From Octopus bimaculoides (lineage: Eukaryota), in the NCBI RefSeq assembly GCF_001194135.2, contig NC_068994.1, positions 12,203,930 through 12,267,929 on the forward strand: 64,000 bases of DNA. The letters are read 5' to 3'. Positions 8,832 through 61,081 of the stretch are shown here, piece by piece (within the stretch, counting starts at the first letter, position 1; every line of letters begins with the position of its first letter). The notes beneath the pieces were generated by a model. The model searched no databases and was not told the origin of the DNA. It was given only the letters and a program-made list of their open reading frames with translations. Both the position numbers and the translations under genes were made by a program.

Positions 8832-9046
8832 TTCTTTTACTCTTTTACTTGTTTCAGTCATTTGACTGTGGCCATGCTGGAGCACCGCCTTTAGTCGAGC
8901 AAATCGACCCCAGGAATTATTCTTTGGAAGCCTAGTACTTATTTTATTGGCCTCTTTTGCCAAACCGCTAAGTTACGAGGACGTAAACACACCAACATCG
9001 GTTGTCAAGCGATGGTGGGGGGACAAACACAGACACACAAACACAT

Positions 9047-9079
<33 letters not shown>

Positions 9080-9251
9080 CATATATATGATGGGCTTCTT
9101 TCAGTTTCCGTCTACCAAATCCACTCACAAGGCTTTGGTCGGCCCAAGGCTATAGTAGAAGACACTTGCCCAAGGTGCCACGCAGTGGGACTGTGTACTC
9201 AGAACCATGTGGTTGGTAAGCAAGCTACTTACCACACAGCCACTCCTGTGC
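8832..9251 (-). mobile_element. tRNA-derived SINE family C (about 420 bp, internal CA/TA microsatellite, AAAGAGT tail)
   Basis: Minus-strand head aggcgcaggagtggctgtgtggtaag...gggttcagtccc; copies at 19900-20250(+), 24342-24648(+), 25944-26515(-), 27000-27391(-), 37765-38125(+), 52764-53146(-), 57520-57850(-), 60665-61081(-). Confidence 0.85.
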
Positions 9252-22454: not shown

Positions 22455-24401
22455 ATACAAATAATATATGAGTATATGAATATATAGGTACATGTATGTA
22501 CATACCTTCATCTACATGTATATATAGATGCATATCTGGGTACATGACGTTGCAAAAAAAACCTGGGCAAAATGATAAACAAGGTACAGAAAACACACAG
22601 GCCACATAGAGAACATTTCCTCCATCAGCTGCCACCATTATAACACTGGCTTTTCAAAGAGTTATGTATATATATTGTGTGTATGTATATATGTATGTAT
22701 ACAACAGGCTTCTTTCAGTTTCTGTTTACCAAGTCCACTTGCAAGGCTTTGGTCAGCTGGGTACTATAGTCGAAGGAACTTGCCTAAGGTGCCATGCAGT
22801 GGACTGAACCTGGAACCATATGGTTTGGAAGCGAACTTCTTACCACACAGCTAAGTCTGCACCTGTGTAAAATATTTTTATTGCTGGGGTCGATTTCTTT
22901 GACTAAAACCCCTTTCAGACAGTGCTCCAGCATGACTGTAGTCAAGTGACTGAAACCTGTAAAAGCATGTATTATATCTCACTCATTAGTTTCAGTCTTT
23001 AGATTAAAGCCTCTTTCTCTTATATACCCCCCCCCACACACACACACACATAGATATGTATAAACAACAGGCTTCCATTTACCAAATTCACTCGCAAGAC
23101 ATTGGTCAGCCTGGGACTATAGTAGACACTTGCCCAAGGTACTGTGGGACTGAACCACAAACCACATGGTTGCAAAGTGGCCATCTTAACCACACAGCCA
23201 TGCTTGCAATCAGATATTTTGAATTAATTGCCATAAAGTAATTATCTAGACATCCTTGGTAGATAAAAACGTATAATTTTACAGACATTTGATGATTATG
23301 AATATTTCTTGTTTGTTCCTTGTTTGTTGTTGTTGTTGTTGTTGTTGTCCACTTCTCTCTGTTGCTTCTCTTTCTTACTGTCTTCGATGCCTGGTACCAA
23401 GTTTCTCTTAAACCTTGCCTCTTGTGCCTGTCACCACCATCTCGGTTAATTAACTTGCATTTCACTTTTGTTACCCCCCCCCCACTCTTTTTTCTCATTC
23501 TTGGAACTCTATCTCTGTCTCTCTCTCTCTCACTCTCTTTGTCTGTCTGTCTCTCTCTACTTCCCCCTTCTCTCTACCACACTCTGCTCCCTTTCTCTCT
23601 CTCTCTCTCTCTCTGCCCCTCTCTCTCTCTGCCCCTCTCTTCCCTCTTATCTCCCTCTCTCCCCCTCGCTGTGTCCATGAAGTTTTATCAGATAGTATAC
23701 AGATCTTTTCTCTTATTTTCTTTTACTTCAGTCACTGGTTTGTGACCATGCTGGGGCACCACCTCGAAGGGTTTAGTCGAACAAACTGACCCTAGAAGTT
23801 ATCTTATCAATCCCTTTTGCTGAACAATTAAGGTATGGGAATGTAAACAAACCAGCAACGGGTATCAATTGGGCACAGGTTCTAAAAATAAACAGTCACA
23901 TCATCAAAATTTTATAGCTACAAGATTATGCATGAATAATTCAAAACAATGAATAAATAAGCTTTGCATTTGGCCGGTGCTCCACAACCTTTTTCCACTT
24001 GCGGTACACTTATATTCCTTTCAGAATTCAGTGGCACAGCTGAACTAAAAATATAACTAAAAGTATAGGGGAAAATATTACATTCAGGTTACACTGTGGC
24101 ATACATAGCATCGTCTTGTGGTACACTAGTGTGTTGCGGAATACCGGTTGCAGAGCACTGCATTTGACAGAGGGATTTGAATGCTAAAGGGTTAAATAAA
24201 GAAACTGTTANNNNNNNNNNNNNNNNNNNNNNNNNNNNNNNNNNNNNNNNNNNNNNNNNNNNNNNNNNNNNNNNNNNNNNNNNNNNNNNNNNNNNNNNNN
24301 NNNNNNNNNNNNNNNNNNNNNNNNNNNNNNNNNNNNNNNNNACCAAAGCCTTGTGAGTGGATTTGGTAGATGGAAACTGAAAGAAGCCTGTCGTATATAT
24401 G

Positions 24402-24432
<31 letters not shown>

Positions 24433-24675
24433 AAGTTTGTGTGTCTGTGTTTGTCCCCCAACATCGCTTGAGAACCGATGCTGGTGTGTATGTGTCCCCG
24501 TAACTTAGCGGTTCAGCAAAAGAGACCGATAGAATAAGTACTAGGTTTCCAAAGAATAAGTCCTGGGGTCGATTTACTCGACTAAAAAAGGTAGTGCTCC
24601 AGCATGGCCGCAGTCAAATGACTGAAACAAATAAAAGAGTAAAAGAGTATTAACCATTAGCGTTTGTTCCTGTAG

Positions 24676-24829
24676 GAAGGAGATGAAGAACTGGAACCAG
24701 ATGAACTTCCAGAATGGAAAAGAGAAGCACCAGCAGTTGATTTTTCCAAGTATGACTCCGGTAATCCTGAAGAACTTCTCATGATGAGCAAGAAAGGCAA
24801 AACTTTAATGATGTTTGTGTCAGTTTCTG
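24676..24829 (+). CDS. MESD: MESD exon 2
   Basis: ctgtag|GAAGGA...TCTG|gtaagt; EGDEELEPDELPEWKREAPAVDFSK...MSKKGKTLMMFVSVS (hallmark KKGKTLMMFV motif). Only partly covered by the ORF track. Confidence 0.95.
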
Positions 24830-26862
24830 GTAAGTATTCTTTATTTCCTTTTTCCATATTGGATATTGGGCTTTCTTTGGACAGTTCTAGTGGCATACAG
24901 TTTGTTAAGAGGTTGGCAACCTCTCACTCAGCCGTTCTCTATTTTTGGATAACGGGAGACGCTGTGAGCAGTTTCCCAGCAACTCTTCTTGCAGTGCAAA
25001 ATAGTCTGATTTAAACAGAGAGAGAAAAGGAAGAGAGAAAGAGAGAGAAGAATTACCCTTGTATTTTATTTAAAAAACCTCTACAGAATAAAAGGCAAAG
25101 TTGACCTTGGTGGAATTTGAACTTGAAAGTACAGGGAGCTGGAAGAAATACTGCAGGGCATTCTATCTGATTCTGTAACCAATCTACCAATTTACTGTCT
25201 TGCCTGGTAACATATTGCTTTATATTCCTTCTGAAGTTTTCTAGAGGTGACTTCAGAATTAACTATGATGATTTAGGTGTAATTCCTATTAGCAAATGAA
25301 ACACGTGTAATGGTGAACAAATAACAAAAAAAATTTCCTGTTGTGTGTGTGTGTGTAACTATTTTCTTACCTTGACAGTGCACAGTAGCTGTAAATGTGT
25401 GTCATCTTCATACAAGCAGTATCCTGTGGTTACAATCTTTCATGGAAACATGTCTGGTCATGGGGAAATATTACCTAACTTGGAAATAGGTGCAAGTTGC
25501 CAACAACAGGAAGAACATCTTACTATAGTAAAATTAATTCCAGCTAATTCCATTTGACCTCTGCAAGCATGGGAAAGTAGACTTTAAAATGATGATGTTG
25601 TTGTTGTTTCCACCCCTCCCCCTTGTTAATGAGTGAGTCTAACTATGTCTAAGGCAGACACTAGCGCATGTTGCAGTCCTTGGACTTATTGGAGCCTGTG
25701 AAACCGTCCAACCCATGCCAGCATGGGAGATGGATGTTAACCCATTACCTCCCATAATTCTATTAACTGGAATTTTTTAATGAAACTTTGATTTCTAGCA
25801 TAAAACAGCCTTAGAAACACGCTGAAATGATCAAAATAACATTTTAAATAGCAATAAGCGAGATATTGGGTGAAAAATTTGGAAACCTCATTTGAATATC
25901 AGAGAAATATACCTAGTAGATATAGCAAAAAGGTTAGATATACTCTTTTACCCTTTTACTTGTTTCAGTCTTTTGACTGTGGCCATGCTGGAGCACCGCC
26001 TTTAGTCGAGCAAATCGACCCCAGGACTTATTCTTTAGAAGCCTAGTACTTATTCTATCGGGCTCTATTGCCGAACCGCTAAGTTACGGGGACATAAACA
26101 CACCAGCATTGGTTGTCAAGCGATATTGGGGGGACACACAGACACACAAACATATACACACATACATATATATCATCATCATCATCATCATCATCGTTTA
26201 ACGTCCGCTTTCCATGCTAGCATGGGTTGGAGGATTTGACTGAGGACTGGTGAAACCGGATGGCAACACCAGGCTCCAGTCTGATTTGGCAGAGTTTCTA
26301 CAGCTGGATGCCCTTCCTAACGCCAACCACTCAGAGAGTGTAGTGGGTGCTTTTACGGGCTTCTTTCAGTTTCCATCTACCAAATCCACTCACAAGGCTT
26401 TGGTTGGCCCGAGGCTATAGTAGAAGACACTTGCCCAAGATGCCACGCAGTGGGACTGAACCCGGGACAATGTGGTTGGTAAGCAAGCTACTTACCACAC
26501 AGCCACTCCTACGCCTATGTGTAAATATTGACAGATAATTACGAAATTTGTAATTTTTAAGTGATCTCATATGAGATCCCTGGTAGGTAATGGGTTAAGT
26601 GATGACGACAATGATGAAGAGTCAATTTGTTTGACTGAAAAACTCTTTGAGGCAGCACTCCAGCATGACTGCAGTCCAATGACTGAAACAAGTAAAAGAT
26701 AAAAGATATTTTGAGTGACTATATAGAGGCTCCTGCTCTTGCTGGCTTTGTGTTATTGTTGATGTTGTTGCTGGTAGTGTTTATCCTCTCTCTCTAGTTA
26801 GCCTTGAATGTGCAAACCTGTCATCAAAGACATTCCAACCATGACCATCTTCTCACTAACAG

Positions 26863-26944: not shown

Positions 26945-27498
26945 GTGAGGAAACAATCCATTTTCTCTTTGTTGTCATTTGTTTTTAATGTCTTTTAGGT
27001 TTTACTCTTTTTTACTCTTTTTAGTCATTTGACTGCGGCCATGCTGGAGCACCGCCTTTAGTCGAGCAAATCGACCCCAGGACTTATTCTTTGTAAGCCT
27101 AGTACTTATTCTATCGATCTCTTTTGCCGAACTGCTAAGTTATGGGGACGTAAACACACCAGTATCGGTTGTCAAGCGATGTTGGGGAGACAAACACAGA
27201 CACACACACACATATATATATATATATACGACGGGCTTCTTTCAGTTTCCGTCTACCAAATCCACTCACAAGGCTTTCGTCGGCCCGAGGCTATAGTAGA
27301 AGACACTTGCCCAAGGTGCCATGCAGAGGGAATTAACCCAGAACCATATGGTTGGTAAGCAAGCTACTTACCACACAGCCACTCCTGCGCCTCACGTGTA
27401 ACAAAATTATAAATGACCTTGGTTTTCAAGAAGCTCAAGCATGGGTTTTCTAAATCCTTAAATTCTATTATTAAAATATTCATTTTTGTGTATTGCAG

Positions 27499-29433: not shown

Positions 29434-32099
29434 GGTGGAAAAAGTCTCTAGTGTGGTCCTAAATTTCCTGAAGAAATAGATTACCAAAAAACCAAAGACA
29501 CAATGAAGAATCTTGAAGAATCTCTTTTCATCCCGACTAAGACGTATATATATATATATATAATATATATATATATAATATATATATATATATATCAATC
29601 AATCAAATGTATGTGCGTATTTTAAAAGGAATAATGATATAAAAAAATAATGGTTTTTTTACAATGAGTCTCCATCATTTATCATCATCATCATCTCCAA
29701 CATCAATGACTTTATAACCGTGACATCTAAATTGGTCTTTTAAACACAGACAGGATTAACTTTCCTCATTCTCTTCCTTTCTTTCCAGTCCCATTGCTCT
29801 GTAAGATATTGAACCCTTTATATCATAAATAAAAATATTAACTAAATGTTTCTATATTTTTATTATATAATATACTGGTTGTGTGGCTGAGAAGCTGGTT
29901 CCCAACCATGTAGTCTTTGGTTCAGTCCCACTGTGCAGCAGGACAAGTGCTTTCTATAGTACTTTGGGCAAATGTTTCCTATAGTACCCCTCTCAAGAAC
30001 TTGATTTGTTGCTACTCGAATCAGTTACCAACCACGTTTGGGCAGAGGTGTGACTGTTTGGTTAGGAAACTTGCTTCCTAGCCATATGGTCTCAGGTTCA
30101 ATCCCACTGGGTGGTAACTTGGGTGTCTTCTACTATAGCCCTGAGCCAACTAAAGCCTTGTGCGTTGATTCGGAAGCTAGAAGAAGCCCATTCTGTATTT
30201 GTGTGTACCCATGTCTTGACATGTGATGATTGTAAACAAATGTTACCATCGTATAAACAATGTTGTTCATTTTCAGTCTTCTGTGGAAAACATTTTCTGA
30301 CCTTATGGAGAAAGGTGAGGGTTAGTGACAGGAAGGACATCCAACTGTAGAAAAATTTGCTTCAACAAATTTCATCTGTCCCAAGCAAGTATGGAAAGTG
30401 GATGTTAAATGATGATGATGATGAAGAAGCTTTGCAGAGTGTACCGAGTGCTTTTTGGGGTACCACATCACTTATTGTTTGTTGACAAAGATACTCCATC
30501 TTCCCTCGTGATTAGTTTGGTATGTGGTTGTGAGAAGAGGAATCTAGTTTTCAGGACTGGCCCCTTCGCCTCAGAGATGTCTACAGACCGTCGACCAAAT
30601 TGCAAGTACCTTGTTTTTTCTACCCGATCGCTCTAAGGTCTGAAGTAACAATCACTGATGANNNNNNNNNNNNNNNNNNNNNNNNNNNNNNNNNNNNNNN
30701 NNNNNNNNNNNNNNNNNNNNNNNNNNNNNNNNNNNNNNNNNNNNNNNNNNNNNNNNNNNNNNNNNNNNNNNNNNNNNNNNNNNNNNNNNNNNNNNNNNNN
30801 NNNNNNNNNNNNNNNNNNNNNNNNNNNNNNNNNNNNNNNNNNNNNNNNNNNNNNNNNNNNNNNNNNNNNNNNNNNNNNNNNNNNNNNNNNNNNNNNNNNN
30901 NNNNNNNNNNNNNNNNNNNNNNNNNNNNNNNNNNNNNNNNNNNNNNNNNNNNNNNNNNNNNNNNNNNNNNNNNNNNNNNNNNNNNNNNNNNNNNNNNNNN
31001 NNNNNNNNNNNNNNNNNNNNNNNNNNNNNNNNNNNNNNNNNNNNNNNNNNNNNNNNNNNNNNNNNNNNNNNNNNNNNNNNNNNNNNNNNNNNNNNNNNNN
31101 NNNNNNNNNNNNNNNNNNNNNNNNNNNNNNNNNNNNNNNNNNNNNNNNNNNNNNNNNNNNNNNNNNNNNNNNNNNNNNNNNNNNNNNNNNNNNNNNNNNN
31201 NNNNNNNNNNNNNNNNNNNNNNNNNNNNNNNNNNNNNNNNNNNNNNNNNNNNNNNNNNNNNNNNNNNNNNNNNNNNNNNNNNNNNNNNNNNNNNNNNNNN
31301 NNNNNNNNNNNNNNNNNNNNNNNNNNNNNNNNNNNNNNNNNNNNNNNNNNNNNNNNNNNNNNNNNNNNNNNNNNNNNNNNNNNNNNNNNNNNNNNNNNNN
31401 GGCACAACAGAAACAGGAAGTAAGAGAGAGAGAGAAAGTTGTGGTGGAAGAGTACAGCAGGGTTCGCCACCATCCCCTGCCGGAGCCTCGTGGGGCTTTA
31501 GGTGTTTTCGCTCAATAAACACTCACAACGCCTGGTCTGGGAATCGAAACTACGATCCTATGACCGCGAGTCTGCTGCCCTAACCACTGGGCCATTGTGC
31601 CTCCACCCAGGTGATGTAGTGTAAGCAAAAAGGGACACACCTTATTTTTCCTCAGTGTCATCCAAAATACACTACATCTGAAAAAAACAAGGGTGAAGTG
31701 GTCACAACTGGAATGACTGTGATCATGACACTAAACAACAGCAACAGGAAGAACACATTAAATAATATAGTCTTAGGTAGACGATGTTTGAAAAAAAAAA
31801 TTAAGATGGGGTGGTCACAGCTGGAGTATATTTGGTCAGGAATGACTAACTTTATTAAAAAAATAAATTTTTAAAGTGATTCAAATTCAATAGGGTCGCC
31901 ATGCTGGTCCCTTCTCAGGTGCAACAGAGAAAAACAATATAACAAAGATCAATACCAGGGATATAACAAGATTCAACTGAAACATCACTTCCACAGTGTT
32001 ATTACATTATAATAAAACAATAATCTACATTTACTCCTATCACCACATTTACAATATGGTCATAATTCTTAATGAAAATGAGATCAAATGCTGTTATTG

Positions 32100-32440
32100 T
32101 TTTTTCACTATTAATTTTGTTTTTATTTCTTTCATTCATTATTTCTTTCTTTATTTTTCTTTCATCCTTCCAAATTTTCTTTATCATTTTTCTTTATTTC
32201 ATTATCATTTTTTCTTTCAATCTTCCAAATTTTCTTTATCACTTTTCTTTATTTCTTTATCATTTTCTTTCATTCTTCCAAATTTTTCTCTATCATTTTT
32301 CTTTATTTCATTATCATTTTTTCTTTCATTCTTCCAAATTTTTCTTTATTTCATTATCATTTTTTCTTTCAATCTTCCAAATTTTCTTTATTTTTCTTTA
32401 TTTCTTTATCATTTCTTCTTTCTTTTTTACTTCAATTTCT
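32100..32440. repeat. Degenerate ~50-60 bp tandem repeat just 3' of the LACTB exon 7b stop
   Basis: About 5 units of ttttctttcaatcttccaaatttttctttatcatttttctttatttcattatca; many AATAAA on the minus (sense) strand. Confidence 0.8.
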
Positions 32441-32485
32441 CTTTCGTTGTCTTTCGTCCAGTCAGTCAGTAACAACACCAAACTC

Positions 32486-33038
32486 CTATACCCGATCAAA
32501 CAGATCAGCTACAGACAAGGCCAATTTACGTAGACTAATATCACCAATATTGCAGATGGCAGTCACAACCACTCCTTTGGGAGGATTAGCCTCTGGCTGC
32601 AATGAATCTCGAGGTAACATAAGCAAAATGCTACTAGCACCAACAGCATTCCCAGTATGGAAAGCATAGAAACGGTTCTTCAAGCAATAAGCATGCTCAT
32701 GTTTGAAAGGAATTAGCTCCCACCCAAGTCCATAGTAAATATCATTAGCTTCAGAGACTTTGGCCCCTTCAACAGGTTTCCACAGATCCAACATTGTTTT
32801 GCGCTTTAGATAGCCCTTCAACCTGGCTTCATTGTTGTTCTCTTTGTTTTGCATACCTTGTCCTGTTTTTGTACTCAAAGGTGATACATTATCATCAAAT
32901 TGGAAGCTGTACAGCATTGCATTTCCAAATTTTATCAAGTCCTCAGCAGTTGAAAGGAATCCACCACCAGCCCACTTGTAAGAATTGTCAACGTAGGGAG
33001 CATTAACCACTTGTCCATTCTTTGAAACACTGTAGAAC
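32486..33038 (-). CDS. LACTB: LACTB terminal exon, distal duplicate 7b (gives 571 aa); intact
   Basis: ttcctctcag|GTTCTAC...GTATAG; FYSVSKNGQVVNAPYVDNSYKWAGGGFLST...HTGNAVGASSILL...DLFDRV*; same phase, no stops or frameshifts. Confidence 0.85.
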
Positions 33039-33084
33039 CTGAGAGGAATACATAAATAAACACAGGTATAAAGCAGGATTGATT

Positions 33085-33370
33085 GATTGATTGATGATTG
33101 ACAGATAGATGATTGGCTGGATAGATAGCAAGAAAGATAGAAAGGTAATAAATAGATAGATGGAGAGTTAGACAGACATATGGATAAAGAGTCAGACAAG
33201 TAAATAGATATAGACAGATAGATAGGGAGATGGAAAGATAAGTAGATAGATGGGGAAATAGATAAACAAGAGATGGAGAGAAAGACAGACTGAAATAGAC
33301 AAACAGAAAGATGTAGAGATAGACAGATTGATGATGGATAGATACTCAGACAGACAGACAGATAAGTAGT
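33085..33370. repeat. Degenerate (GATA/GACA)n satellite upstream of exon 7b
   Basis: Directly visible tetranucleotide mosaic. Confidence 0.85.
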
Positions 33371-33682
33371 GGTACATGGTAGATGCTGTCATAGCACTGA
33401 AACTCATATCCTGCCATAACTATAAACATACAAACTTTAAGCTATTTCTAAATATAAAGCAACTTCAGTCTGACTTTATTGTTGAATTTGTATTTGTATA
33501 ATTAGAGTTGGAGAAAAAGAAAAAGAAAATTGATACACTAAGAACAGAATTACTATAAACAATATTAACCATCTTTCATATGTGTGTGTGTTGCCTGATA
33601 TGCACAGAATATATTCTAATAAGAAGGCAGGAAGTTGACAAATAGAAGGAAAGATTGATAGATAAACTATTGAAAGAATGCT

Positions 33683-33754
<72 letters not shown>

Positions 33755-34143
33755 GAGTTAGGGGTTGGGGGTTCAACCCACTAAGGGATAGTATCTTTCA
33801 ACGGGATACACCGTCTACAAGTAGTTGGGTTCAGCATATTATCCTCCATTTTCTAATTGTTACACATATATATGTGTGTGTGTTTGTGTGTGTGTGTGCA
33901 CATATATATATATATATATACAGATATATATGAGAACAGAATAAAACAGGAAGTTTAGCTTATCTTTTTATTATAACATCATAAATTACAGAATCTTTAT
34001 ACGTGCTAGTGTGTTGTGTAGAAATTGGATAATGAACTTGAAACGCCAGATTTTCAGAAGAAAATGGTAATTTAATCCATTGTTAATTACCACCATAATT
34101 GATATGCAGTGCCAAAAGATATATATATATATATAGGTGCCTG

Positions 34144-34220
<77 letters not shown>

Positions 34221-34369
34221 CTATATATATATATCACTGTATAGTAAGAAGTTTGCTTTCCAACCACATGGTTCCAGGTTCAGCACCTTGGGCATGTATC
34301 TTCTACTATAGCCTCAGGTTGACCAAAGTCTTGTGAGTGGACCTGGTAGATAGAAACTGAAAGTAGGCC

Positions 34370-34408
<39 letters not shown>

Positions 34409-34415
34409 ACATACA

Positions 34416-34717
34416 CAGGGCGACCCCCAAAAAATCAGAACCCATAAAATTTTTATTAAATCCTACAAAGGTCCAGCTAATTTCTTCAAATTTGCTGGAC
34501 TTGAACTTTGGTCTGTGTACGGTCATTCCCTTTGCTTAAAAGTCATGTTCTTTTCAAAATATACTCCAAATGGCATACATTGCACAAAATTGTCAATTAC
34601 TCGAACACATTCCTCTTTGGGGATTTCCTTGATTTCTGCTGTGATTGTTGTCTTCAGTTCACCAATCGTTTGAGGTTTGTTCTGGTAAACATTATCCTTG
34701 AGATACCCCCCCCCCCC
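34416..34717 (-). mobile_element. Tc1/mariner-superfamily 3' fragment (rosa/maT-like C-terminus), cut by an assembly gap
   Basis: Minus-strand YLKDNVYQNKPQTIGELKTTITAEIKEIPKEECVRVIDNF; terminus cagggcgacccccaaaaaatcagaaccc next to TA repeats. Confidence 0.7.
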
Positions 34718-35042
34718 NNNNNNNNNNNNNNNNNNNNNNNNNNNNNNNNNNNNNNNNNNNNNNNNNNNNNNNNNNNNNNNNNNNNNNNNNNNNNNNNNNN
34801 NNNNNNNNNNNNNNNNNNNNNNNNNNNNNNNNNNNNNNNNNNNNNNNNNNNNNNNNNNNNNNNNNNNNNNNNNNNNNNNNNNNNNNNNNNNNNNNNNNNN
34901 NNNNNNNNNNNNNNNNNNNNNNNNNNNNNNNNNNNNNNNNNNNNNNNNNNNNNNNNNNNNNNNNNNNNNNNNNNNNNNNNNNNNNNNNNNNNNNNNNNNN
35001 NNNNNNNNNNNNNNNNNNNNNNNNNNNNNNNNNNNNNNNNNN
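34718..35042. other. Assembly gap between the two LACTB terminal exons (one of 13 N-runs)
   Basis: Other gaps: 5256-5486, 6089-6840, 15249-15258, 24211-24341, 30662-31400, 41954-42066, 44697-44705, 47362-47371, 48474-48650, 53737-54352, 56998-57260, 63288-63903. Confidence 0.99.
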
Positions 35043-35349
35043 GGGGTCACCCTGTGTGTGTGTGTCTGTGTTTGGGTCTGTTCCCCATCATTGCATGGCA
35101 ACCAGTGTTGGTGTGTTTATATCCCCTTAACTTAGCAATTCAGCAAAAAAGACTAATAGAATAAGTATCAGGCTGTTTTTTTAAATTTCTTTCTTTCAGC
35201 CTTTCGTTCATTATTTCTTTCTTACTGTTATTTACTTTTTCATTCGTTTAGATTTTCTTTCTTTCCTTCAAGTTTACTTTGTTTCTTCCAAATTTTCTTC
35301 TTGACTTCGATTTTCCTTTCATTAGTCTTTCAGTAACAACACCAAACTC

Positions 35350-35926
35350 CTATACCCGATCAAACAGATCAGCTACAGACAAGGCTAATTCACGTAAACT
35401 AATATCACCAATATTGCAGATGGCAGTCACTACCACTCCTTTGGGAGGATTAGCCTCTGACTGCAATGAATCTCGAGGTAACATAAGCAAAATACTACTA
35501 GAACCAATAGCACTCCCAGTATGGAAAGCATAGAAACGGTTCTTCAAGCAATAAGCATGATCATGCTTGAAAGGAATAATTTTCCAACCAAGGCCATAAT
35601 AAATATCAGTGGCCTTAGAAGTGTTGGTCCCTTCGACAGGTTTCCACAGATCCAACATTGTTTTGCGCTTCAGATAGCCCTTCAACCTGGCTTCATTGCT
35701 GTTCTTGTAAATGAAGTCTTTGTTTTGTGCACCTTGTCCTTCTGTTTTTGTATTCAGAGGAGATGTGCTATCACCAGAGTCATCAAACTGGAAGCTGTAC
35801 AGCATGGCATTTCCAAATTTTATCAAGTCCTCAGCAGTTGAAAGGAATCCACCACCAGCCCACTTGTAAGAATTATCAACGTAGGGAGCATTAACCACTT
35901 GTCCATTCTTTGAAATACTGTAGAAC
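35350..35926 (-). CDS. LACTB: LACTB terminal exon, proximal copy 7a (gives 579 aa)
   Basis: ttctgtcag|GTTCTAC...GTATAG; FYSISKNGQVVNAPYVDNSYKWAGGGFLSTAEDLIKFGNAML...HTGSAIGSSSILL...PPKGVVV...DLFDRV*; phase 2 matches exon 6. Confidence 0.93.
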
Positions 35927-36052
35927 CTGACAGAAATACATAAATAAACACAAGTATAAAGCAGGATTGATATAATAGATAGATAGAAGGGTAGGTTAAG
36001 AAGTGGTGGCTGTCACAGAGTGTGCTAATTGCTGAAACTACAACACTGGTAT

Positions 36053-36394
36053 TGCTGAGACCCCCTTCGGTCATGACTGACCATGAGATTGCACCTAGAA
36101 AGTTACCCTCCGAAGTACAAGTCCGGGCAAGATTGCTCATGGAAGACCAGCAGTCGCCCATGCATACCGGCCTCCCCTCTCCACGCCACCAGTGTTATCC
36201 AAGGGAAAGGCAAAGGGGCCAATACAGCTTGGCACCTGTGACGTCGCAACTCATTTCTACAGCTGAGTGAACTGGAGCAACGCGAAATAAAGTGTCTTGC
36301 TCAAGAATACAACACACAGCCCGGTTCGGGATTCGAACTCACAACCTCGCAATCGTAAGCTCGACACTCTAACCACTGAGCCATGCACCTTCAC
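36053..36394 (-). mobile_element. tRNA-derived SINE family E with TSD
   Basis: Minus head gtgaaggtgcatggctcagtggttagag...gagttcgaatcccg; 9-bp TSD CACTGGTAT at 36044 and 36392. Confidence 0.85.
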
Positions 36395-36466
36395 TGGTAT
36401 ATGTATATACATATACACATACATACCTATCTTTTATATATATATATATATGTATATGTATATATA

Positions 36467-37710: not shown

Positions 37711-38195
37711 ATTTCTCGCTCAGAGATTTAAAACTAATCGTTTTTCTCCTAACAAGATCAGTGACTGTGTGGCTTGGAGTTCAGTCCTACTGCATGGCAG
37801 GATCCTGGGCAAGTGTCTTCTACTATAGCCCTAGGCTAACCAAAGCCTTGTGAGTAGATTTGGTAGAAGGAAACTGAAAAAAAACCCCCAATACATTGAT
37901 ATATAGGTGTGTGTGTTTGTATTTCATTTGCACCCCATCACTGTTTGACAACCAGTGTTTGTTTGTTTACATCCCCGTAATCTACAAGTTTGGCAAAAGA
38001 GACCACTAGAATAAATACTAAGCTAAAGAAAAAATAAAATAACTCCTGGGATCAATTTGTTTGAGTAAAACCCTTGAAGGCAGTGACCCAGCATGGCCGC
38101 AGTCCAATGACTGAAAAAAGTGAAAAAAGATTTTTAAAAAAAGTGATAAAAATTCCATAATAATAATTAAGTAATAAGGAAGAGTTTCTCCTCAC

Positions 38196-38361
38196 CTGGA
38201 TCTGTTATATATGATGGGTTTATTCCTGTCCAGGTAGGTGTTGTGAAGTCCGAGCTCTCTGAACACTGAGGGCATCATCTTTGTTAAAGATATATTTGAA
38301 GATTTCTCCAAGACAGCACTCACCAATGTCCAGCCGTGTGTTGTATACAGAAACTTACTGC
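38196..38361 (-). CDS. LACTB: LACTB exon 6 (second active-site motif YTT)
   Basis: catctag|GCAGT...TCCAG|gtgagg; GSKFLYTTHGWTLVSAVLE...NKPIIYNRSR (human GSQFLYSTFGYTLLAAIVE...EPVIYNRAR). Confidence 0.95.
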
Positions 38362-38815: not shown

Positions 38816-39047
38816 CTGGTTTGTGAACAAGAGGATCGTCTTTGAAGAGCGTTAGGGCTTCGTCAACATTTTTGAAGGACTTTTTCAGATACATTTCCTC
38901 CATTTTGTAGTCGCTGTTGTTTGAAGATTCAGATAGTTTAACAAGTTCCTTGCTGTTGTTGTTGTTGTTAGTGTTGTTGTTGTTGTTGGTAGAGGCATTG
39001 TTGTTGTTGTTCTTGGTGGTGGTGTTATCGGCACTCTTTGAATCATC
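38816..39047 (-). CDS. LACTB: LACTB exon 5 (poly-Asn loop plus EEMYLK...FKDDPLVHKP)
   Basis: ttttactag|GATGAT...CCAG|gtaatt; DDSKSADNTTTKNNNNNASTNNNNNTNNNNNSKELVK...MEEMYLKKSFKNVDEALTLFKDDPLVHKP; phase 0 in, phase 1 out, consistent with both neighbours. Confidence 0.92.
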
Positions 39048-41226: not shown

Positions 41227-41334
41227 CTTAGAATTATCGTTACTATTTTTATCAGCATCCTTATCTATATACGTCCTGTTGTAGTGACGAATACCACCCA
41301 TGTGAGACAGCAAATGACGGACAGTTAGTGTCAC
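41227..41334 (-). CDS. LACTB: LACTB exon 4
   Basis: ttttag|GTGACA...TCTAAG|gtgagg; VTLTVRHLLSHMGGIRHYNR (human VSVTTRLLISHLSGIRHYEK). Confidence 0.95.
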
Positions 41335-41573: not shown

Positions 41574-41915
41574 TGCTGAGACCCCCTTCGATCATGACTG
41601 ACCATGGGATTGCACCTAGAAAGTTACCCTCCCAGGCACAAGTCCGGGCAAGGTTGTTTATGGAAGACCAGCAGTCGTCCATGCAAACCAGCCTCCCCTC
41701 TCCACACCACTGATGTTATCCAAGGCAAAGGCAAAGGGGCCAATACGGCTTGGCACCTGTGACATCGCAACTCATTTCTACAGCTGAGTGAACTGGAGTA
41801 ACGTGAAATAAAGTGTCTTGCTCAAGAACACAACAAGCAGCCCGGTACGGGATTCGATCTCACAACCTCACGATTGTAAGCTCAACGCTCTAACCACTGA
41901 GCCATGCACCCTCAC
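41574..41915 (-). mobile_element. SINE family E copy with TSD
   Basis: Highly similar to 36053-36394; TSD AAAATTGCACC(T) at 41563 and 41918. Confidence 0.85.
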
Positions 41916-42161
41916 TGAAAATTGCACCTCTATATAGGTGCATGAACTCATCANNNNNNNNNNNNNNNNNNNNNNNNNNNNNNNNNNNNNNNNNNNNNNN
42001 NNNNNNNNNNNNNNNNNNNNNNNNNNNNNNNNNNNNNNNNNNNNNNNNNNNNNNNNNNNNNNNNNNCACTGTCACATATAGAAAAACTTAATTTAATTTT
42101 AATTTTTAATAAATTGAATTTAATTGAGTTTTTACCTGTAAAGTTGGATTTTTATCCCTAA

Positions 42162-47812: not shown

Positions 47813-48003
47813 CTTTTCCCCATCTACTTCTTTCTCAGGGAAGGATGGTACATAGTGCTGGACTGGTTTGTTAAGATCAAGCAGTCCATTCTCCCACATT
47901 TTGGCTACTGCTGCCATGGTGATGGATTTACTAATGCTGGCAATCCTGGTCACGGTGGATGGGGTGTATGGAATTCGATTCTCCAGGTCAGCATAGCCGA
48001 ACC
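47813..48003 (-). CDS. LACTB: LACTB exon 3 with catalytic SxxK (SISK, 47927-47938)
   Basis: cttacag|GGTTC...GAAAAG|gtatgt; FGYADLENRIPYTPSTVTRIASISKSITM...PVQHYVPSFPEKEVDGEK (human GYADVENRVP...RIASISKSLTM). Confidence 0.97.
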
Positions 48004-49519: not shown

Positions 49520-49586
49520 CTTCGCTCCAGACAAGTTCTCCATCAATGCTGACTGCAATAACCAAGCCAGGGGCACTACATTCAGC
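49520..49586 (-). CDS. LACTB: LACTB exon 2
   Basis: ttttcag|GCTGAA...GAAG|gtatct; AECSAPGLVIAVSIDGELVWSE(G) (human EVGAPGIVVGVSVDGKEVWSEG). Confidence 0.93.
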
Positions 49587-51438: not shown

Positions 51439-51837
51439 CTTTTTGCATTCGGCGAGATCTTTAGCTACGACTATAGCTTCTTCTAATGTAAGTTTTTCTG
51501 ATGTGGGTAGCTTCACGAGTCGCTGTGGCACTGGGGGTTGCCGGCATTCTGCAACAGTAGATAGTGTTTGCCTGTTGCCACCCCCGCCGTCGTACAAGTA
51601 ACTACCGACGAGGAGAACAGCCGCGCTGCCGGCTCCTAGTCGAAGAAGTAGACTTTTGAAAATATTCTTTAGGTTTCGTGGTGTTTGTTCTTCACGGAAT
51701 GACGATCGAAACCTGGAAAAAGAACTGGAATACTGTTTGAAGCAGAACTGAGGGGTAACGTGTTGTCTCGTAGACCATGTCGAACGTTGAAGAAGCGATC
51801 GCAGGCAACATAAACGGTTGTTGGCCAATGCAGTCAT
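51439..51837 (-). CDS. LACTB: LACTB exon 1 (mitochondrial presequence plus hydrophobic sorting segment)
   Basis: ATG at 51837; R/S/L-rich N-terminus, hydrophobic LLLRLGAGSAAVLLVGSYLY, then LEEAIVVAKDLAECKK|gtaaat; 133 aa. Confidence 0.9.
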
Positions 51838-54483
51838 TGTTGATGTCTTGTTTACTTACGTGAGACGTCTAAATATAATCAAATATTTATATATAGATAT
51901 ATTCTCTCGCTCACCAAACAGAAAGATCGATGTAATATATAATATTGTAGAAATAATAAGGCAATGTAATGAATGTGATTTTCAAGTCTGCGAGTCACTC
52001 TGAAGATGAAAAAAAAAAGCCTCGGTTTGAAACGGTGCTACATGAGTTTTAATGTTGATTTCCTTTTTCATTTGTCCTTCTTTATATTATTTCCTTAATC
52101 TAAAAAGGTAAAATTCTTGCCTGTTACTCATATTTTTAGTTCAGAAAGATCAAATTGAGTAACAATGCATTTACTGTTTGAATATAAATAACAACAGGTA
52201 AGCGGTAGGTGAGAGAAACACAATACGATGAATTTAGGAGAAGAGTGCTAGGGAGAAGAATATAGGTAGTGCGAGATAGTTGTGTTTTTTTTAATTCTTT
52301 ATTAATGACCCTTGTATATTTCAGATGGGTAATAATAAATGTGTTAGGTTAAATTAAATTGTTGTCTGATCGTCGTTCCAGCCGTGACCATCGTGTTTTT
52401 TTCCCCCCAAGGCAAAGTATTCCATAGACTACACTATCGGATGTGTCCATTATTTTTTAGGGCACTAGGATTTAATTAAGAGAGATTTGGCTGCTATTTC
52501 TAGCAGGCCAGGTGACGCTGATGTTATTTAGCTAAACCAGATCAGACCTGCTCTAGTCGAACAGACATGTTAGCAAGACAATCTAACCATGAGCATCCTG
52601 TCTCTATAAGGAGAGTTTTGCTAAGATTATGTTATCCAAACATGTTCTTAATGGGAGAAAGTGAATTGGAAGAGGTTCGGCAACTAATTCTATCAGACCG
52701 AGTAACGAGATTAGTCTCCCTTATTGGTTCGTGTACTTTGAAGGGTTGCCAGATGGTGCATAATTACTCTCTTTACTCTTTTACTTGTTTCAGTCATTTG
52801 ACTGCGGCCATGCTGGAGCACCGCCTTCAGTCGAATCAAATCGACCCCAGGACTTATTATATCGGTCTCTTTTTGCCGAACCGCTAAGTTACGGGGACGT
52901 AAACACACCACCATCGGTTGTCAAGCGATGGTGGGGGGACAAACACAGACACACAAACATATATATATATATATATACATACATATATACGACGGGCCTC
53001 TTTCAGTTTCCGTCTACCAAATCCACTCACAAGGCTTTGGTCGGCCCGAGGCTATAGTAGAAGACACTTGCCCAAGGTGCCACGCAGTGGGACTGAACAC
53101 GGAACCATGTGGTTGATAAGCAAACTACTTACCACACAGCCACTCCGAAGAGTTCAAAAAGTGTATATAAACATTAAATCCAAGGAGAAAAAAAGTTTTA
53201 AAAATCTCAGGAGAACTTCAGTAAAAGACATATTGGTTAAAGATTACTGTGGACGGGTGTTAAAGTAAACATTAACTGACATATTTAATGGGGTTTATTT
53301 TCTATTTCATTGTTTTAAGATATTGGGGGTGGAGGAGCACGCTTGTAATATCATTATAACTTCTGCTGCCGACAAAAAATAAGCAATATATATAAGAGCA
53401 GGTACGGATGTATGGGTCAGGAGTTCGCTTCCCAATTACATGGTGTTGTGCGCAGTCCCATTGCATAGTACATTGGGCAAGTGTTTTCAACTACAGTCCC
53501 AGGCTGATCAATACCTTTTGAGAGAATTGGTTGACAAAAATATATACACCGGGCTTCACACAGTTTATCCTCACCAGACCTTATACATGCAAACAGAAAT
53601 TTTTCTGTCACATGGTTTCGGGTTCAGTCCCACTGTGTGGCACCTTGGGCAAGTGTCTTCTACTATAGCAGCGGGCCGACGAAAGCCTTGTAAGTGGATT
53701 TGGTAGACGGAAACTGAAAGAAGCCTGTCGTATATANNNNNNNNNNNNNNNNNNNNNNNNNNNNNNNNNNNNNNNNNNNNNNNNNNNNNNNNNNNNNNNN
53801 NNNNNNNNNNNNNNNNNNNNNNNNNNNNNNNNNNNNNNNNNNNNNNNNNNNNNNNNNNNNNNNNNNNNNNNNNNNNNNNNNNNNNNNNNNNNNNNNNNNN
53901 NNNNNNNNNNNNNNNNNNNNNNNNNNNNNNNNNNNNNNNNNNNNNNNNNNNNNNNNNNNNNNNNNNNNNNNNNNNNNNNNNNNNNNNNNNNNNNNNNNNN
54001 NNNNNNNNNNNNNNNNNNNNNNNNNNNNNNNNNNNNNNNNNNNNNNNNNNNNNNNNNNNNNNNNNNNNNNNNNNNNNNNNNNNNNNNNNNNNNNNNNNNN
54101 NNNNNNNNNNNNNNNNNNNNNNNNNNNNNNNNNNNNNNNNNNNNNNNNNNNNNNNNNNNNNNNNNNNNNNNNNNNNNNNNNNNNNNNNNNNNNNNNNNNN
54201 NNNNNNNNNNNNNNNNNNNNNNNNNNNNNNNNNNNNNNNNNNNNNNNNNNNNNNNNNNNNNNNNNNNNNNNNNNNNNNNNNNNNNNNNNNNNNNNNNNNN
54301 NNNNNNNNNNNNNNNNNNNNNNNNNNNNNNNNNNNNNNNNNNNNNNNNNNNNGTGAAAGAGAGAGAGAGATGCCAGAGCAGCCAAAATAGATTGGGAAGA
54401 TTAAAGGTAAAGTAAAATGTAATAGCTAGAGAACAATATTTCAAACATACAGATCCACGTTCGAATGTGATTATATTATTATA

Positions 54484-56789: not shown

Positions 56790-57736
56790 CCTCACCTGGG
56801 AACAAAAAAAGAAAAAAATAATAAATAACCAGCCGGCGGGGGGTGGGGTGTTAAGAAGTATGTGGAAAACGAATATAAAAAAAAAAAAAAACGCGCGCCG
56901 ACGACCCTGGGGTGGGGAGAGGACTTTCGGAAAATTCACAAAATCCGATTTTTCCGTCATAACTTCCGGTAAAATGGATATATATTGATTTTTTTTTNNN
57001 NNNNNNNNNNNNNNNNNNNNNNNNNNNNNNNNNNNNNNNNNNNNNNNNNNNNNNNNNNNNNNNNNNNNNNNNNNNNNNNNNNNNNNNNNNNNNNNNNNNN
57101 NNNNNNNNNNNNNNNNNNNNNNNNNNNNNNNNNNNNNNNNNNNNNNNNNNNNNNNNNNNNNNNNNNNNNNNNNNNNNNNNNNNNNNNNNNNNNNNNNNNN
57201 NNNNNNNNNNNNNNNNNNNNNNNNNNNNNNNNNNNNNNNNNNNNNNNNNNNNNNNNNNNNTTTGAATTTGTTTTAATTTTTTCCATATTCTTAATCTCCG
57301 TGTTTTCCCACGTAGATTGTTGGAAAAAAAAATTCGAAAAAAAAATTTTTGAAGAAAGTTTAAAAAAGAAAGTTTGTTATATTACTGCGGGAAATTACTC
57401 TGAAAGAAATCTTTGCAGAAAGGTGAGTAGATTGATTGCATTATGTCATCGCAGTTTTGTGAGATTTGGCTGTTATTTCTAGCATATGGATAGCCTGCTC
57501 GAAGGCCTGAGGGTATATGTATTCTTTTACTTGTTTCAATCATTTGACTGCGGCCATGCTGGAGCACCACCTTTTAGTCGAGCAAATCGACCCCAAGACT
57601 TATTCTTTGTAAGCCTAGTACTTATTCTATCGGTCATTTTTGCTGAACCTCTAAGTTACGGGCACGTAAACACACCAGCATCGGTTGTCAAGCGATTGTT
57701 GGGGGGGGGGGGACAAACACAGACACACAAACATAT

Positions 57737-57767
<31 letters not shown>

Positions 57768-58120
57768 CATATATATGACGGGCTTCTTTCAGTTCCCGTT
57801 TACCAAATCCACTCACAAGGCTTTGGTCAGCCCAAGGCTATAGAAGACACTAAATTTTGAAAATGCGATTTTTTGAAAATATTTTTTGGGGGAATCGGAC
57901 TCTCCATAACCAAAAATGTGGGATTCCGTAAAAAAGATCAATATATATCTACCTTACCGGAAGTTATAACGGAAAAATCCGATCTTGTGAATTCTCCGAA
58001 AGTCCCCTTCCCACCCACAGGGTCATTAGCGTGCATTTTTTTTCCATATCCATTTTCCACATACTTGTTAACACACCCCAGGCTAGTTAATTTTATTTTT
58101 TGTTTCTTGTTAGGAGGATA
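56790..58120. mobile_element. Foldback-type element with about 200-bp inverted arms, enclosing a gap and a truncated SINE
   Basis: Left arm ...gtgttaagaagtatgtggaaaac...ggactttcggaaaattcacaaaatccgatttttccgtcataacttccggtaa (to 56997) is the reverse complement of 57925-58120 ...ttaccggaagttataacggaaaaatccgatcttgtgaattctccgaaagtcc...ttttccacatacttgttaacac. Confidence 0.75.
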
Positions 58121-58599: not shown

Positions 58600-58705
58600 A
58601 AAATGTTTCTTTTGAAGATAGTAATCCTCTAAATTTTACCATTTTAAAAAAAAAATAGATTTCATTTCTTTTACATTTCAGTTACTCGTGTTTAGAAGGA
58701 ATAAA

Positions 58706-60643
58706 ATGGTGAAGGATATCAAAAATAATATGTTTATTTTCCAACTTTTATTGCTTGGGTTTGTTCTTGTATCTGAAGTTGTTGCGGACAATTCTTCACT
58801 CGACATTCATTCCTTTTCTGTCATAAGTGACGTCAAGTTTCGCTATGCAACCACAAGACTGGAAACTGTATTCAAGAACACACGTAAATCTGCAGCGTTG
58901 GCCATATTTCACGTCAACATTCCAGAAAATGCATTTGTTTCAAATTTTACCATGGCGGTTAATGGTTCTGTATTCGTGGGAGAAGTTCTAGAGAAAAAGG
59001 AAGCCAGGGAAATTTACAACAAAGCTGCGCAAAGAGGTGAGACAGCAGCTTACGTCGGCACTGAACATAGGTACTCAAACACATTCCATGTGATGGTCAG
59101 TGTAGAGGCACAGCAAACAGCTGTGTTCACACTCACATACCAAGAGCTATTACAAAGGTCATTCGGGAAATACAGACATGTTATTCATTTAACCAACGAA
59201 CAAATCATTGAGAACTTTAAAATAGAAGTCTTTATATCAGATCTTCAAGGCATTGAACTTAAGCAAGTGAGTCTTGAGAAAAATGATATTGAAACAAGTA
59301 GGGAGACGAAACAAGTAGGGAGCGTAGACTACATAAGCAATAAACAACTTTATATAAACTATGAACCCAGTGTGTCTGACCAGAAGGCCTTCTCTTCTCA
59401 GGGAATCACAGGACTGTTTGAAGTAAACTATGATGTTGACTGGAAAGTATCTTCAAACATGGTTTATGCTATCGATGGATACTTTGTACATTTTTATGCT
59501 CCTGATTCTTTCCCCTCACTTCAGAAGAAGATAGTTTTCATATTAGATGTGAGTGGTTCAATGAATGGCCATAAAATAAAACAAATGAAAAATGCAATGA
59601 AAGGTATCCTTCATTCTTTGAAACAAGCTCTGGACACATTCATGATTGGAATATTTAGTGAAAGCACCAAATGGATGACTGATGGTTTTTTGCCAGCAAG
59701 TAAGGAGAATATTGATGTTGCTTTAAACTATATTGATAAATTAGCAGCAGATGGAGGAACAAACATTAATGAAGCTCTTCTTACTAGCCTGAATAAATTT
59801 GATAATCAGAAGTCCAGTGAGACTAAAAATTTAGTCTTTTTCCTGACTGATGGCCAACCAACTAATGGTGTCAGCAACTTGAATAGTATTATGAAAAATG
59901 TGAAAGAAGCCAATAGTGACACTTCTACTTCTATTTTCACATTGGGCTTTGGTGAAGGTAGTGACATGGATTTCTTGAAACAACTTGCTGGTGAAAATGG
60001 TGGATTTAGTCGTAAGATTTATGTAGCAGCTGACAGTCGAATGCAAATCTTAAACTTATATTCAGAAATTTCTCGCATCCTTTTGAAAAACATTGATATA
60101 GTTTACCTAGATGATGCTATCAATCGTACAACCTTAACAAAAAATTCATTTAGCTATTACTTCAAAGGATCAGAGATAGTTATTGCTGGTACCACATCAG
60201 AACAATTGAAAGAAGACATAAGCATTTTGCTCACAATGGACACTTCTTCTGGTTTGAAATCTGAAAAAGTAAAGCTGCCTGTTGAAAATCTTGATGATGA
60301 ATTTCCATTAGGTCTTGAATCCATTCCACAGAATCCCAGACTGACTACACTTCAGTCTCTTCATACTATAACTCGCAACACATGGGTCCAGCTCACTTTA
60401 AAGAGGCTATTAAATTTAGAAAGAACTCCAGAAGTTCAAAAACGGATAATCACAATAGCACTCAAATATGGCTTTGTTACGCCTCTGACTTCAATGGTGG
60501 TTGTACAAAACAGGGAAATGAAAATGGTTAGGGAAGCTTACCATCGACGTACTTATGCTCTTAAGGCAAGTCATGCACTTGCATGTGGAAATACCTGCTG
60601 CTTTTCCTTTTACCTACTGTTGGTTATCGGTTGCCTCCAAATG
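58706..60643 (+). CDS. Inter-alpha-trypsin inhibitor heavy chain-like protein (signal peptide, VIT, vWA with intact MIDAS), main coding exon, 646 codons
   Basis: Long ORF; ATG at 58706 (alternative 58730); hydrophobic signal FIFQLLLLGFVLVSEVVA; VIT-like DVKFRYATT...IPENAFVSNFTM...TFHVMVSVEA...FTLTYQELL; DGYFVHFYAP; MIDAS DVSGS...GGTNI...FLTDG; KYGFVTPLTSMVVV; donor ATG|gtaaga at 60644. Specific ITIH orthology cannot be assigned. Confidence 0.92.
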
Positions 60644-60664
60644 GTAAGAATTACTTATTATTAT

Positions 60665-61081
60665 TATACTCTTTACTCTTACTCTCTCTTTTACTTGTTT
60701 CAGTCATTTGACTGCGGCCATGCTGGAGCACCGCCTTTAGTCGAGCAAATCGACCCCAGGACTTATTCTTTGGAAGCCTTGTATTTATTCTATCGGTCTC
60801 TTTTGCCGAACCACTAAGTTACAGGGACGTAAACACACCAGCATCGGTTATCAAGCGATGGTGGGGGGACAAACACAGACACACAAACACACATATATAT
60901 ATATATACATACATATACGATGGGCTTCTTTCAGTTTCCATCTACCAAATCCACTCACAAGGCTTTGGTTGACCCGAGGCTATAGTAGAAGACACTTGTC
61001 CAAGGTGCCACACAGTGGGACTGAACCCGGAACCATGTGATTGGTAAACAAGCTACTTACCACACAGCCACTCCTGCGCCT
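60665..61081 (-). mobile_element. SINE family C copy filling most of the last intron of the ITIH-like gene
   Basis: Full-length match to 8832-9251; it provides the apparent C-terminal ~45 codons and the TAA of the ORF-track call 58688-60817. Confidence 0.88.

Follow-up and report, generated by a model that had tools for sequence, protein, structure and literature searches.

LACTB, a mitochondrial protease that forms filaments, is a tumour suppressor whose natural substrates and whose link between polymerisation and catalysis are still under study. The stretch of Octopus bimaculoides DNA analyzed here (the window; 64,000 nt of contig NC_068994.1, RefSeq assembly GCF_001194135.2, positions 12,203,930 to 12,267,929) carries a complete LACTB gene on its minus strand, in which six upstream exons, running from 51837 to 38196, are followed by two diverged copies of the terminal coding exon, 7a and 7b. 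These copies may encode alternative C-terminal thirds of one enzyme.

The upstream exons, all on the minus strand, were placed by open frames, similarity and canonical AG/GT boundaries, and the spliced model gives a complete protein. Exon 1 (51439-51837) starts with the ATG at 51837, has an open frame with a presequence-like N-terminal region and ends at the GT donor GCAAAAAG|GTAAAT. Exon 2 (49520-49586; cag|GCTGAA to GAAG|GTATCT) codes for AECSAPGLVIAVSIDGELVWSE(G). Exon 3 (47813-48003), with AG/GT boundaries and a translation that includes ...TRIASISKSITMAAVAK..., holds the catalytic S-I-S-K motif, and exon 4 (41227-41334) extends from tag|GTGACA to TCTAAG|GTGAGG. Exon 5 (38816-39047; tblastn matches at 38915-38757) encodes a flexible Asn-rich loop, and its acceptor is the least certain boundary of the gene model. 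Exon 6 (38196-38361), also matched by tblastn, holds the Y-T-T motif and reads ...AGATCCAG|GTGAGG, with the donor GT at 38195-38194. Its 3' end at 38196, ...AACAGATCCAG|GTGAGG (TCCAG|GTGAGG), passes two codon bases to the next exon, and the first G of either terminal copy completes the codon (AG|G, Arg), followed by F-Y, which agrees with the human junction ...IYNRAR|FYVY. The exon 5 loop (39047-38816, minus strand) is of low complexity and rich in Asn, Asp and Ser (...NNNNNASTNNNNNTNNNNN...), at the place where human LACTB has its basic, cardiolipin-binding flexible loop (residues 243-290), so that membrane binding may work differently here.

By every sequence criterion tested, the gene is a member of the LACTB family. 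The two spliced models, of 579 residues with 7a and 571 with 7b, fit the Pfam Beta-lactamase family (PF00144, cut-off 27 bits) equally well as predicted proteins, scoring 161.6 bits (E = 3.6e-47) and 163.0 bits (E = 1.3e-47), respectively. The three active-site motifs are present, in the exons to which the original prediction had assigned SxxK, Y-x-T and HTG: SISK in exon 3, YTT in exon 6, and HTG in both 7a and 7b. Named protein-database matches are vertebrate LACTB, and the best solved-structure matches of copy 7b are human LACTB chains only (E about 1e-42).

Copy 7a (35350-35926, minus strand; HTGSAIGSSS) is 577 nt long including the stop, with 191 codons before it, and copy 7b (32486-33038, minus strand; HTGNAVGASS) is 553 nt long including the stop, with 183 codons. 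They share the same open frame, the HTG motif and an identical end, ...DLFDRV*. Their acceptors, ...tatttctgtcag|GTTCTAC for 7a and ...tattcctctcag|GTTCTAC for 7b, have pyrimidine tracts of 14/20 and 15/20, which in this sequence-level test lie within the range of the other LACTB acceptors. Within the exon, 45 of 549 aligned nucleotides differ (91.8% identity); in the protein, 163 of 183 aligned residues are identical (89.1%), leaving 20 replacements. Three indels, of 9, 3 and 12 nt, all preserve the frame, which would happen by chance in 1 case in 27. A second variable stretch reads GTNTSKATD..WKII in 7a and GAKVSEAND..WELI in 7b, and among the peptide segments that distinguish the copies are ...PVEGTNTSK against ...PVEGAK/VSEANDIYYGLGWELIPFK, together with the HTGS or HTGN strand. 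The coordinates, acceptors, phase, open frames, common end, indel lengths and variable motifs given in the original prediction were thus all borne out.

In the self-comparison of the window, the two exons came out as a single duplicate pair (32317-33095 and 35187-35984) with 83.5% identity over 814 columns including gaps (E = 0). The copies lie on the same strand, about 2.9 kb apart. The duplicated unit of approximately 800 bp comprises the exon, about 57 nt of upstream intron and about 165 nt of 3' untranslated region (UTR). The shared intron segments, at 35927-35984 before 7a and 33039-33095 before 7b (both on the minus strand), cover the branch-point and pyrimidine-tract region, and 42 of the last 45 intron nucleotides before the acceptors are identical (93%). 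Upstream, the similarity stops at a (CTAT)n-type microsatellite, and beyond the unit the flanks of the two copies do not align, even at word size 7. Searches of the window with tblastn and self-blastn found no second copy of any other LACTB exon, as had been predicted, and no further LACTB exon between or after the copies; therefore, within the window 7b has no phase-compatible partner other than exon 6.

The original prediction regarded both copies as functional coding exons and proposed that dN/dS between them be computed. Pairwise comparison gave a nonsynonymous distance (dN) of 0.056-0.062 and a synonymous distance (dS) of 0.155-0.21, with a ratio (omega) of 0.27-0.40, and neutrality of both branches (omega = 1) was rejected (P = 0.003). 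The ratio was dropped as the decisive test, since these values do not reject a mean of about 0.5, and it was replaced by a test on outgroup-defined conserved codons together with a simulation. The 55-61 codons used, chosen blind to 7a and 7b, show conservation across 120 LACTB homologues as well as in the nearest outgroup. At these codons the copies show 7-8 synonymous differences, a proportion (pS) of about 0.19 that is the same as elsewhere, and 0-1 private amino-acid changes in either copy. When neutral evolution of either copy was simulated at half the observed synonymous distance, 8-9 changes were expected there, with P = 0.0004-0.0014 for none and P = 0.003-0.01 for at most one; a cruder Poisson estimate for a neutral branch gives about 12-13. 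A stop codon arose in about 74% of the simulated runs, whereas neither copy contains one, and about 28 replacements were expected on the neutral branch alone against 20 observed in total. Polarised by outgroup, 6 replacements are private to 7a and 4 to 7b, where a dead copy would lead one to expect a ratio of about 10:1 (P = 0.009). On these codon-level tests, protein-level constraint has acted on both copies for most of the period after the duplication. The claim of two functional coding exons is supported in that, at the observed synonymous divergence, there is no decay, stop or frameshift in either, while alternative splicing itself is what we infer from this constraint.

An assembly gap between the copies, raised as a caveat in the original prediction, is indeed found at 34718-35042, 308 nt 3' of the 7a stop. 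It lies outside the coding sequence, so that the reading frame across it is not at issue. The gap is held within a DNA-transposon remnant (34409-35061) with 19-nt terminal inverted repeats at 34409-34427 and 35043-35061, which are 89% complementary; the right arm abuts the gap on the 7a side and its partner lies on the 7b side. Beside the gap and inside the transposon there is a transposase-like C-terminal frame of 58 codons (34705-34532, minus strand), for which no Pfam match was found, and we take the element to be mariner-like on our own reading only. The transposon in turn interrupts a repeat resembling a short interspersed element (SINE), whose first half (35053-35174, minus strand) and second half (34237-34406, minus strand) lie on opposite sides of the gap. 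Their orientation and order are those of at least five uninterrupted copies in the window (8929-9239, 27096-27378, 52852-53139, 57612-57847 and 60775-61067), in which the halves are separated by a few microsatellite bases only, and the insertion point of the transposon is this central microsatellite. Because the nesting of transposon in SINE spans the gap and would not be recreated by a wrong join, the gap very probably conceals the interior of the transposon, and the contig join is, as judged from this structure, very probably real.

The SINE-like family is about 330 nt long, has an internal (CA)n(TA)n tract and is present in at least 10 copies in the 64 kb, with 70-85% mutual identity; further copies lie at 24342-24540 and 37779-38130, one of them just downstream of the exon 6 donor. 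At the edge of the gap, 12 consecutive G (34706-34717) look like a sequencing or gap-closing artefact.

To locate the differences between the two predicted products, we aligned both copies to the published human structure and use human LACTB numbering, in which the exon begins at F374. The motifs of the human enzyme are 164-SISK, 323-YST and 485-HTG (485-487), and K394, W454 and Y460 lie near the catalytic site, W454 being named in the cryo-EM study as lining the catalytic cavity (PMC9815587). Polymer interface 1 includes Y377, R382, L383 and S527; in interface 2, the L15 loop (467-482) docks in a pocket formed by A413, Y416, P432, Y434 and the L12 loop, and there is also an H352-E457 salt bridge (PMC9815587). 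The human region that matches exon 7 contains the HTG strand, the part of the cavity with K394, W454 and Y460, and most of interface 2, and breaking the contacts abolishes activity (PMC9815587).

Mapped in this way, the differences between 7a and 7b concentrate on the predicted substrate cavity and filament contacts. The copies have I and V, respectively, at the position of Y377. All three indels and seven replacements fall in the loop at 420-431, which is probably L12. In the stretch 450-456 the replacements are T/A, N/K, T/V, K/E and T/N (7a/7b), including a K/E charge swap at W454, just before the conserved Asp equivalent to human E457. Positions 465, 466 and 472, flanking and inside L15, show K/E, I/L and D/E; the L15-equivalent segment is ungapped in both copies. 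Positions 488, 490 and 492, at +1, +3 and +5 after HTG, show S/N, I/V and S/A. The swap at W454 and the changes after HTG support the earlier statement of differences between the copies around the substrate site. With the outgroup as reference, the derived states are those of 7a in the 450-456 stretch and those of 7b at the residue that follows HTG and at the one two places further on. These same sites are the less conserved surfaces of the family, so that their location alone does not prove adaptive divergence.

Considering that coding selection on a terminal exon requires its splicing into mRNA, and that exon 6 is the sole phase-compatible partner, alternative acceptor choice is the most likely arrangement: both copies would be spliced to exon 6 as mutually exclusive terminal exons. 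We suggest the following mechanism. A piece of about 800 bp, comprising the last coding exon, about 57 nt of intron with the acceptor and the start of the 3' UTR, was duplicated within LACTB. The exon 6 donor (38195) would then join either the proximal acceptor (7a, 35926) or the distal acceptor (7b, 33038), and this choice would give two mutually exclusive C-terminal thirds. Both predicted isoforms would have the presequence, the SISK nucleophile and the YTT motif in common, and the differences would lie in the last third, where the HTG strand, most of the filament-forming contacts and part of the substrate cavity are located. That 7a and 7b are alternative terminal exons giving two isoenzymes is the explanation towards which we lean, with some reserve, and with the same reserve we would expect, jointly with it, that the two products differ in substrate preference, in filament assembly or in both. 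The fuller proposal of two LACTB isoenzymes, made by terminal exon choice, with different substrate preferences and forming separate or mixed filaments, is a tentative one, which may well turn out otherwise.

It could also be that the duplication is real and only one copy is used, the other being a silent relic in the last intron (7a) or in or beyond the 3' UTR (7b), not visibly disabled or only recently disused. We consider this unlikely, though it has to be taken seriously, and several observations speak for it or weigh against two isoenzymes. The pairwise dN/dS is compatible with one neutral and one constrained copy (mean omega about 0.5; P = 0.03-0.2), and the selection tests, which assume neutral synonymous sites and equal branch lengths, are compatible with a recent loss of use. 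In a simple model, all splicing would tend to go to a proximal acceptor that matches the distal one in quality, as it does here. A search for docking/selector RNA pairing between intron 6 and the 57 conserved nt that precede each acceptor found none: the best duplexes have -24.9 and -26.2 kcal/mol, against a mean of -25.6 (standard deviation 2.9) for shuffled controls. A protein search of sequence collections gave no relative above 54% identity, and a metagenome scan gave a best match of 48%. In the nearest relative with genomic context, an invertebrate contig (L001) that shares 85% identity with the window in exon 5 and 73% in exon 6, there is one terminal exon, and no second copy lies within 10 kb; therefore, the pair is not known as conserved in any other species. 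A second copy was found in none of 81 loci, among which about 35 have animal-type LACTB terminal exons, most with short flanks, and none is a close relative. What makes a relic unlikely is that a neutral copy should have gathered 8-9 replacements at the conserved codons and in most simulations a stop, neither of which is seen; in addition, none of the three indels shifts the frame, the replacements are balanced between the copies, and the acceptor-proximal intron is 93% identical in both.

If recurrent gene conversion from a used to an unused copy had kept both frames intact, the constraint would not reflect selection on both. Such conversion would fit the identical stretches, at most 68 nt long, that the first and last thirds of the exon contain, but these coincide with the most conserved protein segments. 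Conversion would also erase synonymous differences along with replacements, whereas pS in the conserved codons is at the overall level, and the synonymous differences are evenly spread along the exon (Kolmogorov-Smirnov P = 0.83), so that gene conversion does not explain the conservation; we regard it as very improbable. An artefact of assembly, either alleles placed in tandem (an uncollapsed haplotype) or a 7b contig from another locus that was mis-scaffolded, is suggested by the gap between the copies, by the fragmented assembly (13 gaps in 64 kb) and by the 7b contig (31401-34717) of only 3.3 kb with gaps on both sides, which likewise counts against two isoenzymes. Alleles would share their flanks and would not carry 20 replacements and three in-frame indels; the similarity restricted to about 800 bp, the difference of 16.5% including indels and the unrelated flanks are far from allelic and make a haplotype in tandem very unlikely. 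A mis-scaffolded contig is made unlikely by the transposon nested in one collinear SINE-like element across the gap, and no other LACTB exons point to a second gene. An assembly artefact of either kind is thus very unlikely, and alternative use of 7a and 7b is the explanation that we retain.

The 3' ends bear on which copy is the original. The start of the 3' UTR after 7a (35187-35349, minus strand), which is homologous to the sequence after 7b, has only AGTAAA, at +72 and +114, and the 307 nt that separate the 7a stop from the gap contain neither AATAAA nor ATTAAA, AGTAAA being the only signal of this type. The next canonical hexamers downstream of the 7a stop lie at 893 nt (AATAAA), 1274 nt (ATTAAA) and 1378 nt (AATAAA). 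The 7b stop is followed by nine AATAAA within 630 nt, eight of them in its 3' UTR (32126-32485, minus strand), the first at +84, and the ninth at 31856. Considering that canonical poly(A) signals cluster after 7b, and that 7b is slightly closer to outgroups (56.3% identity to the L001 terminal exon, against 54.6% for 7a), the gene probably ended in 7b originally, 7a being the copy, which would now lie in the last intron.

The first 170 nt or so of the 3' UTR after 7b are homologous to that of 7a and then give way to an A-rich tandem repeat (32126-32422; period 55/109, about three copies, 81-90% matches), which multiplies AATAAA eight-fold. In L001 (5512-10543), the terminal exon is only 55-56% identical to those of the window, against the 85% and 73% of exons 5 and 6, and the last exon has thus diverged much faster between the two lineages.

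Elsewhere in the window, a 344-nt segment occurs in LACTB introns 6 (36053-36396) and 3 (41574-41917), on the same strand and with 91% identity; these are its only two copies in the window, and it is probably a young interspersed repeat. Both neighbouring genes lie on the opposite strand. Downstream of LACTB there is an exon of a MESD-like chaperone gene (24676-24840, plus strand; Pfam Mesd, E = 3e-20), and upstream there is an uninterrupted open frame of 730 codons (58625-60814, plus strand) with VIT and von Willebrand A domains, like an inter-alpha-trypsin-inhibitor heavy chain.

If two isoenzymes are made, the gene would offer paired natural variants of one third of an enzyme, with which the residues that set substrate choice could be tested against those that set filament compatibility, and it would be a natural experiment on the coupling of filament interfaces and catalysis in LACTB. 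It would also provide an enzyme-core example of duplicated alternative terminal exons, which in humans concern mostly tails, anchors and disordered ends (PMC9741552). If RNA shows that a single copy is used, the pair would be a young intragenic exon duplicate of little wider interest.

Our literature search found nothing that links LACTB with duplicated terminal exons or LACTB with octopus. The statement in the original prediction that no description is known therefore holds for LACTB, but the class of mechanism is well known (PMC9013439; PMC9741552). The arrangement belongs to this known class of duplicated alternative terminal exons.

Compared with human LACTB (PDB 7ULW, 7V1Y and 7V21), copy 7b matches the chains over its full length, and SISK, Y-x-T and HTG are common to both proteins. 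The human protein is described with a single C-terminal region, whereas the gene in the window has two copies. The window protein further differs in a longer, indel-rich loop at human 420-431, in K or E in place of W454, and in the Asn-rich loop that replaces the basic membrane-binding loop.

Among human tandem-duplicated exon substitution events, 77 of 236 swap homologous C-termini, an enriched category (PMC9741552). There, as in the LACTB pair, homologous neighbouring exons lie in one gene; in the human events they are used one at a time, and the isoforms are otherwise identical. These human events have transcript and in many cases proteomic support, and most of them are of ancient origin and vertebrate-wide (PMC9741552), whereas use of both LACTB exons is deduced from selection. 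Unlike them, the LACTB pair seems confined to its lineage (dS about 0.15-0.2); the part of that article consulted here does not discuss LACTB among the human events.

Tandem duplicated 3' exons that give homologous C-termini are also present in LAMP2 (exon 9A/B/C) and GNAO1 (exons 7-8). The tropomyosin 3' exon sets (TPM1, Tm1 and lev-11) are of the same kind (PMC9741552). These genes swap coiled-coil tails, membrane anchors or G-protein receptor-coupling regions, whereas the LACTB pair would exchange a third of an enzyme fold with an active-site strand.

The Drosophila gene pipe carries clusters of duplicated terminal exons that are mutually exclusive, and in PGRP-LC the choice falls among 3' variable regions (PMC9013439). 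In both genes, duplicated 3' terminal exons are chosen singly (PMC9013439), as we propose for LACTB. The choice in PGRP-LC is made through competing RNA structures, of which we saw no sign at LACTB, and pipe has eight clusters, whereas LACTB here has two copies. The alternatives of pipe encode versions of a catalytic sulfotransferase domain, which makes them the closest parallel to the alternative catalytic halves predicted here.

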